Of a stretch of DNA of 64,000 nt, positions 18,100 to 22,657 are shown in pieces; within the stretch, counting starts at the first letter, position 1; every line of letters starts with the position of its first letter. The stretch lies in sequence record NC_061448.1; one strand, written 5' to 3'. The notes under the pieces are model-generated. The model searched no databases. It saw only the letters and a list, made by a program, of their open reading frames with translations, and was not told the origin of the DNA. The position numbers were made by a program, and so were the translations under genes.

Positions 18100-18302
18100 A
18101 TAGAAAAATGATCGCTTGGCTTTCGCTGGTGGTCTTCTGCGTGGTGGGAGTCGTTACTTCCACCGTAGCATTGAATGACTATAACCTGCTATTGAGCTTG
18201 ATACTAACAGTCGTGTTTGGTGCCGGGCTTATCATCTGTATGCGTTGTCTTGAAAGAGCAACGTGGGACTACTGCGTTAAGAAGGGGAAGAAGAATGGCT
18301 AA
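18096..18302 (+). CDS. Small two-TM membrane protein
   Basis: Two hydrophobic stretches, basic C-terminus. Confidence 0.7.
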   Translation: MNRKMIAWLSLVVFCVVGVVTSTVALNDYNLLLSLILTVVFGAGLIICMRCLERATWDYCVKKGKKNG

Positions 18303-18828
18303 GTCACTTGGCGTTTATCTGACGTATGTTCTGCGTCACAAGCCGCAAGACATTGGCATCGCTATGGACACTCAGGGCTGGGTATCTGTGCATGACCTGC
18401 TTGAGAAAGCACGATACAACAAACCGGTCACGATGCAAATGCTGATCGAAGAAGTAGCGAACGACGACAAGGGGCGCTTCGAGTTCAACGCAAGCAAGAC
18501 CCGCATTCGCTGTGTTCAAGGACATTCGTGTGAGCACGTCATTCTCAATCTCGAACCGTGGACAGACTGGAGTCCGTTGTATCACGGTACCGCTGAGAAG
18601 AACATCGCATCGATCATGCAAGACGGCATCCTGAAACGCAAACGCAAGCACGTCCATATCAGCAACGATATTGAAACTGCGAAGCGTGTGGGTCAACGTC
18701 ATGGTGTGCCTGTTGTGTTTCAGATTGATACGCTGTCCATGATTACTCATGGTTATAAATTTTACCGCGCAGAGAATGGCGTCATTCTTACCGAGTATGT
18801 ACCGTCGCGCTATATTCGACTGGTGTGA
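18295..18828 (+). CDS. kptA: RNA 2'-phosphotransferase KptA/Tpt1
   Basis: LTYVLRH, GWV, DDKGRFE, IRCVQGHS, LYHGT, RKHVHIS, GQRHG, NGVILT. Confidence 0.92.
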   Translation: MAKSLGVYLTYVLRHKPQDIGIAMDTQGWVSVHDLLEKARYNKPVTMQMLIEEVANDDKGRFEFNASKTRIRCVQGHSCEHVILNLEPWTDWSPLYHGTAEKNIASIMQDGILKRKRKHVHISNDIETAKRVGQRHGVPVVFQIDTLSMITHGYKFYRAENGVILTEYVPSRYIRLV

Positions 18829-19299: not shown

Positions 19300-19620
19300 A
19301 TGAAAAAGACAAAAGTTGAACCTACCATTGAAGGCCGTATCTTTACTTTGTTTGGTGTTGGTCCTGTTCCGGACGAATCAACAATACCATTCGCAGACCG
19401 TGATACATTTCTTCCGATGCTGCGTAAAGTTCAGGAAAGTGCTCAACTGGAACGCATTCGTGGTTTGTCCTGTTGTCCGTATTGCCGAGAGACAATGATG
19501 CTCGGTGAATACACCAAAGACAACTGGCTGTGGTCCTATTCATATCAGCATATGATTGAACACCACAACGTAACGCCGTCCGCAGAATTTATTGCTTACG
19601 TCGAAACCGCTTCCAAGTAA
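19300..19620 (+). CDS. Small putative Zn-binding protein
   Basis: RGLSCCPYC...WLWSYSYQHMIEHHNV. Confidence 0.75.
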   Translation: MKKTKVEPTIEGRIFTLFGVGPVPDESTIPFADRDTFLPMLRKVQESAQLERIRGLSCCPYCRETMMLGEYTKDNWLWSYSYQHMIEHHNVTPSAEFIAYVETASK

Positions 19621-19646
19621 CCTGAACTTCGCCTGAGGATATGTAC

Positions 19647-21050
19647 ATGAAAAAGATTAAACACACTTTCCGACTGACCGACCTTGTTCGTATTGCCGAT
19701 GTTCTGCCTGTCACTATGAAACACTTTAGTGGTGCTGGCGAAGAAGCAATTGTTGTTGAACGTAATGATACCTCTGATGAATATGGGTTGCACATCAAAC
19801 ATCATGGTTACGTTTCGTGGTACCCTGCTGAAAGCCTGACGCTTATCAAACACAACCAGAGCGAATTGCTTGACAAGTGGGAAGCTGGTAAGTACGGCAA
19901 GAAGAAAAAGAAAGAGCGCAAGATCCCCGATGAACTGCGCAACTTCACCGCTATCTTGCCTGTGACTTGCAACGCTGATTGCTCTTTCTGTCCTGAGAAA
20001 GAGATGGAGAACAAGGCGCCGCAGAAAGAGTGGCAAGACAAACTGATTGCTGCGATTAAGACACACGGCCATCGTGTCGATCACGTATCAATCTCCGGCG
20101 GTGAACCTACGCTGCGTATGAAGTACCTGTTCGAAACGATCGACCAGATTAAGACAAAAGCGCATATGCGCAAAGTGGGTCTGACTTCGAACGGTCAGTT
20201 CCTTGAGAAGCCGAATCAGTTGCTGACGTTTCTCGATCTGAACACGGACGAGATGTTGGAAAGCAAACTGTCGCATCTGAATATCAGTATGCACTCGTTT
20301 GACCGCGAGAAAGCAAACAAGATCATGGGCGTCAACTATACGTGGACTCTCGAAGACCTTGCTCGCTTCCGTCGTCAGTTAGGCCGCAAACTGAGTTTCC
20401 ACATCAACTTCGTTATCAACGAACAGAACATTGATAACATCGAGTGGGAGTTCCGTCAGGCCAACGAGTTCATGAAAGAGAACCAGTGGATTGACGTTGT
20501 ATTCCGTGTTGACTACGACAACAAGAAACTGAACAAAGAACTGCGTAAGTATGGTCTGGCTGTACAGGCTGCGCGTGAAGCAAAACGTCCACGCGATAAG
20601 AGCATCAAGTACACGCCTCCGAAAGTTAAAGAGCCTAAGCTGATCAAGCTGTTTAACTCTATCTTCGACGGTAGCTTCTACGACGAACTGACCGAAGAGA
20701 CTATGCCTGGCTTTGGTGATACGTTCACAACCGCGTGTCCGTCGTGCTTCACTCACCGCAGCACTGACTTAGGTAACAGCTTCGCATATCTGAAAGCGTC
20801 TTCATACGAACCGAACGAAGACGAAGAAGAATACACTGAGATGGTATTCCACATGGACGGTGGTCTGTACTTCGATTGGTCGCGCAAAGAGCCTGTGCCA
20901 GAAGTGAAAGCGAAGAAAGCTAAACCTCTGCCTCGTTTGAAGAAAGCGAAGAAGGCTGAACCGAAAGGTTATCCTGATAGCTGCAACTATTCTTCTCCGT
21001 GCAGTTACTCGCGTGGCTCGTCTTGCAGTTTTGGCAGCGGTATGTGCTAA
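19647..21050 (+). CDS. Radical SAM protein with N-terminal SH3-like domain and Cys/Ser-rich C-tail
   Basis: CNADCSFC, SISGGEPT, LTSNG, LNISMHS; CPSC; tail SCNYSSPCSYSRGSSCSFGSGMC. Confidence 0.88.
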   Translation: MKKIKHTFRLTDLVRIADVLPVTMKHFSGAGEEAIVVERNDTSDEYGLHIKHHGYVSWYPAESLTLIKHNQSELLDKWEAGKYGKKKKKERKIPDELRNFTAILPVTCNADCSFCPEKEMENKAPQKEWQDKLIAAIKTHGHRVDHVSISGGEPTLRMKYLFETIDQIKTKAHMRKVGLTSNGQFLEKPNQLLTFLDLNTDEMLESKLSHLNISMHSFDREKANKIMGVNYTWTLEDLARFRRQLGRKLSFHINFVINEQNIDNIEWEFRQANEFMKENQWIDVVFRVDYDNKKLNKELRKYGLAVQAAREAKRPRDKSIKYTPPKVKEPKLIKLFNSIFDGSFYDELTEETMPGFGDTFTTACPSCFTHRSTDLGNSFAYLKASSYEPNEDEEEYTEMVFHMDGGLYFDWSRKEPVPEVKAKKAKPLPRLKKAKKAEPKGYPDSCNYSSPCSYSRGSSCSFGSGMC

Positions 21051-21425: not shown

Positions 21426-21892
21426 TGCCTCGCATGTTCACTGATACACACCGCAAGAAATACTATCGTCGCAAAGATGACCCGCAGTATCACGGTGACC
21501 TGTGCGAGTCATTGCACATCGAAGGTATGGAAACGCTGAAAGATCTGAAATACTTTCAGACTGCTATCGGCGCAATGCGTAGACGCGACAATATGAAAGT
21601 CGATACGTCGCGTAAATTCCAAGAGTGGGAACGTCTTGGTATGCTGATACGAGGTAATCCCGATATTCGGGAGTTGCAGAAACATGTTCACGCTTGTGCG
21701 TCCAGACTGAAAGCACTTCGCATTGCTTATACCGAAGCGCACTCTAAACGACACAATCAACCGCTGCGTTTTGAAGTGAAAGACGCAGACAACAATCGTG
21801 TTGATTTGTTCGTGACCTACGATGCAGCGAAATACTGCAAACTGTATTCTGGACTAGGTGCAACTATCGAACGTTACGAAGGAGATAAGTGA
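21425..21892 (+). CDS. Hypothetical basic protein
   Basis: TAATG coupling. Confidence 0.75.
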   Translation: MPRMFTDTHRKKYYRRKDDPQYHGDLCESLHIEGMETLKDLKYFQTAIGAMRRRDNMKVDTSRKFQEWERLGMLIRGNPDIRELQKHVHACASRLKALRIAYTEAHSKRHNQPLRFEVKDADNNRVDLFVTYDAAKYCKLYSGLGATIERYEGDK

Positions 21893-22380
21893 TGGCCAAG
21901 CATCATACGTTTCGTCTGAATGATATGTGCGCCGTTCAAGGCAAGCGCAATGTATTCGGTCCGCAACAAGGCGAGCATGTTATTGTTGTGGGACGTCACC
22001 CTGATCTGAATGAGTACACCGTGTATTACAAAGACGGTCTGTACGGTTGGTTCAAAGCAGAAGACCTGACGCTTGTACAACACGATGCCCATGCACAACT
22101 TGAAGTGTGGGAAGACGCGTACAATGAACGTTGCAAACAAGATGATGACACTGTGAATGATTCGCCTAAGTGTAAATCATGCGATGAACCTCTTGGCGAA
22201 GATCGTATTGAGCAGGGCCTGTGTATAAACTGCGACTTCGATGAAGATGCACTAGATGAACTGAGCAAGAAGCTCGACCGAATCGAAGCTGGGCATTGTT
22301 CTGAGTGTGACAAGAAATTGGATAGCGACGAAGGTGATGACGAGTCAATGTGTCTGTCTTGTCGCTGCAACGAAATTTGA
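21889..22380 (+). CDS. SH3-like domain plus two CxxC...CxxC zinc ribbons
   Basis: N-terminus aligns with the radical SAM N-domain; CKSC/CINC/CSEC/CLSC. Confidence 0.8.
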   Translation: MMAKHHTFRLNDMCAVQGKRNVFGPQQGEHVIVVGRHPDLNEYTVYYKDGLYGWFKAEDLTLVQHDAHAQLEVWEDAYNERCKQDDDTVNDSPKCKSCDEPLGEDRIEQGLCINCDFDEDALDELSKKLDRIEAGHCSECDKKLDSDEGDDESMCLSCRCNEI

Positions 22381-22393
22381 GGATAGAAATAAA

Positions 22394-22657
22394 ATGGCTG
22401 TTGGTTTTGTAAAAGACGATGGCGTAAACGATACCATCGAAACAAACGTGATGAACGAGATTGACCGCGCTCGTTCAGAACTTCTAGGCGTGGGTTCAGA
22501 TTACTGCGTCAACCCTGATTGCGGTGCAAAGATTCCTGTGATGCGCAAACTCGCTATGCCGAATGCGCGTTACTGCATTACCTGTCAGGCAGCGCATGAC
22601 GGCACTGCTAATGTCGGCTATAATCGCCGTGGCTCAAAAGATTCTCAGTTGAGGTAG
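22394..22657 (+). CDS. ybiI: YbiI-like DksA/TraR C4 zinc-finger protein
   Basis: EIDRAR...C..CGAKIP..R...P.AR.CI.CQ and C-terminal GYNRRGSKDSQLR as in enterobacterial YbiI. Confidence 0.88.
   Translation: MAVGFVKDDGVNDTIETNVMNEIDRARSELLGVGSDYCVNPDCGAKIPVMRKLAMPNARYCITCQAAHDGTANVGYNRRGSKDSQLR

Follow-up and report, generated by a model that had tools for sequence, protein, structure and literature searches.

The radical SAM gene pEaSNUABM1_00277

The window analyzed here, a 64,000-nucleotide (nt) stretch of NC_061448.1, came from the Erwinia jumbo phage pEa_SNUABM_1, a 267-kb Alexandravirus. The subject of this analysis was pEaSNUABM1_00277, a gene in the window whose product is a radical S-adenosylmethionine (SAM) enzyme that ends in a short tail with repeated Cys motifs. 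The open reading frame (ORF) was 100% identical to MZ443776.1, and a second in-frame ATG was located at 19641, 6 nt upstream of the annotated start.

The Pfam model PF04055 (Radical_SAM) matched residues 108-267 of the protein with a score of 55.4 bits, compared to a gathering cutoff of 29.5. The CX3CX2C motif for the [4Fe-4S] cluster (C108-NAD-C112-SF-C115) was invariant in 67 of 67 relatives, and the core had a partial TIM-barrel fold. The fold was taken from an AlphaFold2 (AF2) model that was generated with an alignment of 67 relatives and had a mean predicted local distance difference test (pLDDT) score of 83.5. These features identify the gene product as a radical SAM enzyme. An initial annotation, made from the letters of the sequence, had described such an enzyme followed by a Lys/Pro-rich linker and a tail with C-N-Y, C-S-Y, and C-S-F repeats, and the translation matched this description exactly. 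Specifically, a Lys-rich linker and then DSCNYSSPCSYSRGSSCSFGSGMC closed the protein, and the C terminus read VPEVKAKKAKPLPRLKKAKKAEPKGYPDSCNYSSPCSYSRGSSCSFGSGMC directly before the stop codon. The gene and its parts were as follows.

19647..21050, + strand: radical SAM gene pEaSNUABM1_00277, 467 amino acids (aa) from the annotated ATG, annotated as "hypothetical protein"
19647..19907, + strand: N-terminal SH3-like all-beta domain, residues 1-87 (AF2 strands at 13-68)
19908..20711, + strand: radical SAM partial TIM-barrel core, residues 88-355 (PF04055; AF2 pLDDT >90; VIA Z 15-17)
19968-19991, + strand: CX3CX2C cluster motif (C108, C112, C115) within the radical SAM core
20712..20894, + strand: acidic C-terminal beta domain, residues 356-416 (net charge -8; conserved EP...HxDGxLYxDW motif)
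20736-20747, + strand: CPSC knuckle (C364, C367), invariant, at a hairpin tip in the AF2 model
20895..20972, + strand: disordered Lys/Pro-rich linker, residues 417-442 (net charge +8; pLDDT <55)
20922-20942, + strand: KPLPRLK, a clade-conserved short motif in the linker (alignment of relatives)
20973..21047, + strand: Cys tail PDSCNYSSPCSYSRGSSCSFGSGMC, residues 443-467 (three C-x-[YF] motifs plus a C-terminal Cys)
20982-20990, + strand: C-N-Y motif of the translated tail
21000-21008, + strand: C-S-Y motif of the translated tail
21024-21032, + strand: C-S-F motif of the translated tail
21045-21047, + strand: fourth tail Cys, the final residue (the protein ends in GMC)

In the alignment of relatives, the only invariant Cys residues in the core were the SAM-cluster triad and the pair in the CPxC knuckle. 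The invariant columns of the acidic C-terminal domain were C364, C367, E388, P389, G405, D410, and W411. From about residue 424 onward, the linker and tail were disordered and undocked in the AF2 model, with pLDDT values of 36-45 (about 36 in the tail). The N-terminal SH3-like domain matched the MIB1 REP domain in VIA comparisons (Z 8.0) and was absent from many shorter relatives. Among these were the Snuvirus and Rivsvirus homologues of 379 and 386 aa from pEa_SNUABM_7 (L018) and pEa_SNUABM_5 (L019). In pEa_SNUABM_7, an 81-aa ORF at 1593-1838 overlapped the start of the homologue at 1798-2937.

Conservation of the Cys tail in the closer relatives

When the last 30 residues of the window protein were shuffled, three or more C-x-aromatic motifs arose with P=0.003. 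Over 66 relatives, 152 such motifs were observed, compared to 24.5 +/- 4.4 in the shuffles. These results excluded a chance origin of the tail motifs.

The initial annotation had proposed conservation of the tail in homologues as a check, and the tail proved to be a hallmark of the family. In each of the 19 annotated phage homologues (Alexandravirus, Sasquatchvirus Y3, Snuvirus, Rivsvirus, and one Yersinia phage), two to four C-x-[YF] motifs came after a basic linker that differed in length, and many of the proteins terminated right at such a motif, with RCGY, SCQF, SCSF, or GCNY preceding the stop codon. A Cys tail was also found in 66 of 67 clustered database relatives, with 2-10 Cys per tail. 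F, Y, or W occupied the +2 position of 62% of 245 tail Cys residues, compared to a background of 6.8%, and Gly occupied the +1 position of 47% of them.

All tail residues except the Cys and the +2 aromatic varied among homologues. A codon comparison showed that the Cys codons swapped between TGC and TGT and the aromatic codons among TAT, TAC, TTT, and TTC (Y/F swaps included), while the middle codon of the motif was free to change its amino acid. Because the Cys and aromatic codons changed synonymously and the middle codon varied freely, selection acts on the tail at the level of the protein motif.

The initial annotation had also noted that no separate precursor was evident nearby, and this held for the phage as a whole: we found no C-x-aromatic repeats in other real ORFs of the 267-kb genome. 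The idea that the motif marks a substrate in trans, i.e., another protein of pEa_SNUABM_1, was rejected on these grounds. Another of its proposals, a 4-Cys auxiliary metal or Fe-S site, is unlikely to lie within the tail alone because many homologues have just two tail Cys, and we rejected a fixed site of this kind.

Linker length across the family ranged between about 20 and 200 aa. A P[LM]P motif was present in the linkers of 11 of 67 relatives, and its KP[LM]PxLK form was found in the window protein and 10 others. An [KR]RFDFE[MF]K or FGF[DE] motif was found in 17 relatives, and an LLG motif was found in a distant clade. Because the linkers hold such clade-conserved short linear motifs, they are probably docking or recognition elements, and more than tethers. 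The median linker charge was +1 and 54% of the linkers were positively charged, so a basic linker was rejected as a universal trait.

Cys-Gly tails in the wider phage family

When 1.84 billion cluster representatives were searched with a profile, 159 of them matched at E<1e-30 and 596 did so at E<1e-10. Nearly all of the matches listed, which were about 25-45% identical, ended in Cys-Gly motifs after a disordered linker. Examples were SGCGSSGC and GCGRSGC, both at the stop codon, and SCGGGSCGG. The aromatic residue was often absent from the tail motif altogether. Thus, C-x-aromatic is a local, clade-level form of a family-wide motif in which Cys has a small neighboring residue.

Tail Cys were counted in 192 members: 12 members had none, 3 had one, 75 had two, 19 had three, 46 had four, 18 had five, 10 had six, and 9 had 7-10. 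The final two Cys in this set were spaced 5-9 residues apart, and the final Cys was 0-2 residues from the C terminus in 161 of 180 members. Judging from these sequences, the firmest family-wide rule is that the tail has no fewer than two Cys; these are set among Gly/Ser and mostly lie at the extreme C terminus. In L061, L065, and L078, the Cys motif was internal, with another domain after it. The variation in copy number and position points to a recognized motif in a disordered region, unlike a fixed structural site. An ESM Atlas search returned only unnamed radical SAM clusters, and a search of viral contigs for loci related to P0151, a short-tailed relative, found none.

Split forms in which the tail is a separate gene

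A fused tail was the majority state and was found in >90% of family members. The tail-less relatives had an ORF of 60-100 aa directly downstream, whose start codon usually abutted or overlapped the stop codon of the enzyme gene, and the predicted product had a helical or basic N-terminal region and a terminal Cys-Gly motif. The following small Cys-Gly ORFs were located downstream of tail-less enzymes.

L026, 6011-6316: small Cys-Gly ORF
L027, 3491-3730: small Cys-Gly ORF
L028, 2770-3018: small Cys-Gly ORF
L032, 1418-1645: small Cys-Gly ORF

In L029 and L084, the Cys motif was at the N terminus of a separate upstream protein. Pfam and NCBIfam scans of the small proteins and the tail produced only coiled-coil or bZIP-like noise.

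We scanned 80 metagenome loci systematically for a motif ORF beside the enzyme, using mechanical ORF calling. An adjacent motif ORF was present at 11-12 of the 16 assessable tail-less loci and at none of the 41 loci with a fused tail, and the motif occurred in 11 of 769 background ORFs. At 4 of the 16 tail-less loci, no partner gene was detectable, and these enzymes still retained CPxC. Thus, in the loci scanned, the tail and the enzyme were fused or adjacent, never both. In a quick FastTree tree of trimmed core-domain columns, the tail-less members were scattered over about 9-10 separate positions, and this scatter implies that the enzyme and the tail were probably fused or split repeatedly.

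Because tail-less relatives encode the tail as a separate adjacent small gene, the tail is a discrete, separable, and dedicated peptide partner of the radical SAM enzyme. This is what a fused substrate predicts. The cis-fused substrate proposed in the initial annotation was therefore partly borne out: a dedicated, Cys-containing, precursor-like peptide was found, fused in the window and adjacent in split relatives. In contrast, the SPASM/twitch Cys set and the recognition domain of maturases for peptides that are ribosomally synthesized and then modified posttranslationally (RiPPs) were not found (see below), and the two-Cys rule fits other explanations too.

Gene neighborhood

No conserved neighbor other than the Cys peptide was found across the differing genomic contexts, which included a dCMP deaminase and a helicase, phosphatases and Thg1, sheath and tube genes, and a portal and a prohead protease. 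A conserved set of neighboring pathway genes was rejected because the contexts differ. Since no other neighbor is conserved, the enzyme and the Cys peptide look like a self-contained pair.

A Tpt1/KptA RNA 2'-phosphotransferase gene (18295-18828, + strand; Pfam E=3e-45) was located two genes upstream of the radical SAM gene, and this position was retained in the Alexandravirus, Y3, and Yersinia phage relatives. In L028, a distant relative, the radical SAM gene was located between phosphatase genes and a Thg1-like gene. The presence of these genes hints at a possible link between the radical SAM gene and RNA-end repair or modification.

Several other small genes lay close by. A small ORF with a CCPYC motif (19300-19620, + strand) was located upstream of the radical SAM gene and had a weak match to DUF7919 (E=0.009); it preceded the radical SAM gene in several Alexandraviruses and was missing in some relatives. 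Downstream, a 162-aa ORF (21892-22380, + strand) shared the SH3-like N-terminal domain with the radical SAM protein (BLASTP, 36% over 74 aa, E=2e-11), and this domain may be a common docking module. The C-terminal half of the ORF product had four CxxC pairs (CKSC, CINC, CSEC, and CLSC) and was zinc-finger-like. Further downstream was a gene for a DksA/TraR-type C4 zinc-finger protein (22394-22657, + strand; Pfam E=1.4e-7), and a gene of this type was also annotated close to the homologue in phages SNUABM_5 and fHe-Yen9-02.

Relationship of the core to characterized enzymes

The core was assignable to no characterized radical SAM subfamily. In Foldseek and VIA-align comparisons, the fold matches were tied among several radical SAM enzymes. 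The VIA Z scores were 17.1 for GDGT-MAS, 16.9 for MoaA, 16.6 for viperin, 16.1 for SuiB, 15.2 for SkfB, 14.3 for CteB, 13.8 for anSME, and 13.7 for the pyruvate formate-lyase (PFL) activase; DesII, ChlB, and EpeE were further structural neighbors. A sequence search of the PDB placed viperin first (E=2e-12) and also returned MoaA (E=5e-10).

None of the NCBIfam matches approached a cutoff. The top match was HxsC (E=3.4e-15), which scored 55.7 bits compared to a cutoff of 267.9, and an HxsC identity was rejected based on this score and on the unrelated neighboring genes. A viperin identity was rejected as well (48.4 bits versus 180 for prokaryotic viperin and 28.2 versus 450 for viperin). The RiPP maturase models yielded about 20-30 bits versus cutoffs of 300-650. 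We found no SPASM (7-Cys) or twitch Cys set in the core, which had CPxC only, and no Pfam match to SPASM. No RiPP recognition element (RRE) or PqqD-like domain was found with Pfam or NCBIfam, and the N-terminal domain was the SH3-like beta fold.

The MoaA models matched at E=8.5e-15, with 47.7-54.7 bits versus cutoffs of 231-325, i.e., about a fifth of the cutoffs. The hhalign profile alignment with Escherichia coli MoaA covered residues 104-229 only, which is the N-terminal half. An identity as MoaA (GTP 3',8-cyclase) was rejected based on the scores below the cutoffs and the lack of the CX2CX13C motif and a GG end. GenBank labels Y3_274, the homologue in phage vB_EamM_Y3 (L010, 1507-2850), as "GTP 3',8-cyclase MoaA." Because the MoaA scores were about one-fifth of the cutoffs and the auxiliary-cluster and GG features were missing, this label is unsupported and looks like an over-annotation.

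The tail as a possible tethered substrate

Based on sequence and genomic context, the reading that we favor is that the tail is a tethered substrate of the radical SAM enzyme, with a chance that we judge to be slightly short of even. SAM would be reductively cleaved at the CX3CX2C [4Fe-4S] cluster, and the flexible tail of the same or a neighboring molecule would fold over and enter the barrel through its lateral opening, where a tail Cys would probably engage a site associated with CPxC. The 5'-deoxyadenosyl radical would then modify the Cys-x-aromatic units, for example, by forming a thioether or C-C crosslink or by oxidizing the Cys. The tail would thus enter the active site and be modified there, not merely used, with a putative chemistry and a presumed benefit to the phage.

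Several findings favor this reading. The copy number and position of the motif were variable, and the sequence outside the motif was hypervariable. The motif had clade-specific versions, which would be expected if the peptide and the specificity of the enzyme co-evolve. The linkers carried leader-like motifs (KPLPRLK, RFDFE, and LLG), the split genes were precursor-like, no other partner was conserved, and the neighbors by fold included the Cys-peptide maturases SuiB, SkfB, CteB, anSME, and EpeE. In the AF2 model, the tail was predicted to be disordered and undocked (pLDDT about 36), as would befit a substrate.

Other findings weigh against a tethered substrate. With fusion in >90% of members, each enzyme would make one product and leave it attached, unlike classical RiPPs, and we found no conserved protease, exporter, or RRE domain. 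The core had CPxC only and not the SPASM/twitch Cys complement. The rule of two or more Cys near the terminus would also fit a dithiol or a metal-chelating arm, the nucleotide enzymes viperin and MoaA scored as well as the peptide maturases, and AF2 produced no docked pose of the tail. A bolder form of the idea is somewhat less probable: the enzyme would rewrite its own tail throughout a large phage-specific family in which the peptide was fused or split many times, it would be the first natural cis-fused radical SAM substrate, and the modified tail would be a warhead, crosslink, or cofactor during infection.

Two alternatives use the tail Cys for a different purpose. By analogy with other enzymes, the terminal Cys pair could be a mobile dithiol that feeds H atoms or electrons to the reaction or re-reduces a CPxC disulfide, while the radical chemistry takes place on a different molecule, for example, RNA or a nucleotide; the tail dithiol would then be re-reduced by thioredoxin or glutaredoxin of the host. 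We consider this explanation unlikely, yet it is a serious contender. Two or more Cys were near-obligatory (two in 75 members and four in 46, compared to one in 3) and lay near the C terminus, the core had an invariant second Cys pair in CPxC, and the tether was long and disordered, with fusion as the majority state. Moreover, the closest sequence matches were nucleotide enzymes (viperin and MoaA), and RNA-end enzymes were encoded nearby, namely, Tpt1 in the window and Thg1 and phosphatases in L028. However, a shuttle needs neither up to 10 Cys nor several motif copies, and it would leave the clade-wide +2 aromatic unexplained. The motif can also be internal or N-terminal, and a dedicated small helical motif protein in the split forms would be odd, given the host redoxins. 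To our knowledge, there is no precedent for a redox or H-donor arm in a radical SAM enzyme, which we counted against it. The other alternative, which we rank below the dithiol as rather unlikely, is that the tail Cys pair and CPxC together form a Cys4 metal site or an auxiliary [4Fe-4S] or [2Fe-2S] site, and that docking of the tail gates the active site in a MoaA-like manner; this modifies the metal or Fe-S alternative of the initial annotation. CPxC forms an invariant knuckle of the rubredoxin type at a beta hairpin, no second one exists in the core, and a minimum of two tail Cys would supply 2+2 ligands. The tail-less relative P0066 had an extra Cys in its C-terminal domain, as such a site might predict. 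In this clade, auxiliary clusters with ligands from substrate or tail residues, such as a substrate Cys, are known (PMC10177961), and MoaA has a flexible C-terminal tail in its active site (PMC12625886). In contrast, AF2 left the tail away from CPxC (pLDDT about 36) with the 67-sequence alignment, the linker length varied about tenfold, and the Cys copy number ranged from 2 to 10. A ligand arm also leaves the +2 aromatic unexplained, the motif was sometimes internal or on the N terminus of another protein, and tail-less enzymes kept CPxC, even the 4 of 16 without a detectable partner gene. A fixed ligand site is disfavored by the failed AF2 docking, the range of linker lengths, the additional copies, and the motifs placed internally or at an N terminus, all of which are compatible with transient binding.

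Two further explanations are less probable than these. It is improbable that the tail is unrelated to catalysis and is a basic, Cys-containing appendage for targeting or for binding nucleic acids or proteins, similar to a protamine or a zinc knuckle. The window linker was strongly basic (+8), the split-form proteins had basic or coiled-coil regions, and some relatives were in head or tail gene modules, all of which would suit such an appendage. However, basic charge was not family-wide (median +1, 54% positive), and the strict fused-or-adjacent pattern with one enzyme family suggests a direct functional partnership. Still less credible, and in our view very improbable, is a fused glycyl-radical site, in which the enzyme would act as the activase of its own tail and generate a stable glycyl (or thiyl) radical there. 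The fingerprint of glycyl-radical sites is RVxG[FYW], which reads RVCGY in NrdD. The tails SRCGY and TRCGY (both at the stop codon) and GRCGF were common in relatives and resemble this fingerprint, Gly followed 47% of tail Cys, and the PFL activase was among the fold neighbors (Z 13.7). However, the Arg is one residue out of register with RVxGY, and glycyl radical enzymes have their Gly in a buried loop, unlike the multiple copies on a disordered tail seen here. For the window clade, this explanation was rejected; all three motifs have Asn or Ser in the position of the Gly and keep the Cys and the aromatic residue.

Significance of the family

We found no published description of this phage radical SAM family in full-text literature searches, and the AD1 paper merely listed the gene. 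Phage lineages that carry the pair of radical SAM enzyme and Cys peptide number at least in the hundreds, with 159 cluster representatives matched at E<1e-30. Should the tail be the substrate, radical reactions on peptides could be studied in one ready-made polypeptide, and the modified tail would represent a new class among the modified proteins that phages make. A tail that serves as a redox or metal arm would instead be a new way to supply electrons or to gate radical initiation in the superfamily. In both cases, a radical SAM gene that is among the more common "hypothetical" ones in large phages becomes open to experiment, and the analysis corrects the misleading "GTP 3',8-cyclase" label in phage Y3.

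Comparison with known systems

Mobile C-terminal arms with a Cys pair are found in the class I ribonucleotide reductase NrdA, thioredoxin reductase (GCUG tail), MsrA (Gly-rich), and MerA. The phage tails resemble these arms in having a terminal Cys pair, a Gly/Ser context, flexibility, and a second Cys pair in the core. In contrast to the phage family, the arm-bearing enzymes are not homologous to it and none is a radical SAM enzyme; their tails have a single Cys pair and a fixed length and are not known to be encoded as a separate small protein.

Systems that form three-residue cyclophanes (triceptides) use radical SAM enzymes with SPASM domains that act on repeated aromatic-x-x motifs. The repeated three-residue motifs with an aromatic residue are a likeness to the window protein; in the latter, however, the Cys is first and the aromatic residue is third, and the wider family is often without the aromatic residue. 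In the HXS antiphage system, the radical SAM enzymes HxsB and HxsC mature HxsA, a protein with His-x-Ser repeats (PMC13128918). Both systems combine a radical SAM enzyme with tripeptide repeats in a basic context. The window family differs in that it is phage-encoded, lacks an HxsB/HxsD partner, has Cys-x-aromatic or Cys-Gly repeats, and carries its target fused to the enzyme.

MoaA and viperin provided the best sequence and fold matches of the window protein. In MoaA, a disordered C-terminal GG tail triggers SAM cleavage and belongs to the active site (PMC12625886). In contrast, the window protein lacks the auxiliary CX2CX13C motif (it has CX2C only) and a terminal GG.

The sactipeptide/ranthipeptide synthases SkfB, CteB, and PapB and the peptide maturases SuiB and anSME are in the radical SAM clade that, by fold, is common to maturases and the window enzyme, and PapB crosslinks Cys to C-terminal residues (PMC12373016). 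The phage family is similar to maturase systems in having a short, disordered, Cys/Gly/Ser-rich partner peptide with repeated minimal motifs, whose gene is adjacent in the split forms. It differs in that the SPASM/twitch set and the RRE are missing and the NCBIfam scores are far below the cutoffs. Moreover, the peptide of the phage family is usually fused, its genomic setting is that of lytic phages, and genes for a protease or an exporter are missing. The known radical SAM enzymes for Cys-rich peptides come from bacterial gene clusters in which the enzyme and its precursor are two separate proteins, whereas here the peptide is normally within the enzyme; it is this natural cis-fusion, together with the wide phage distribution of the pair, that sets the family apart.

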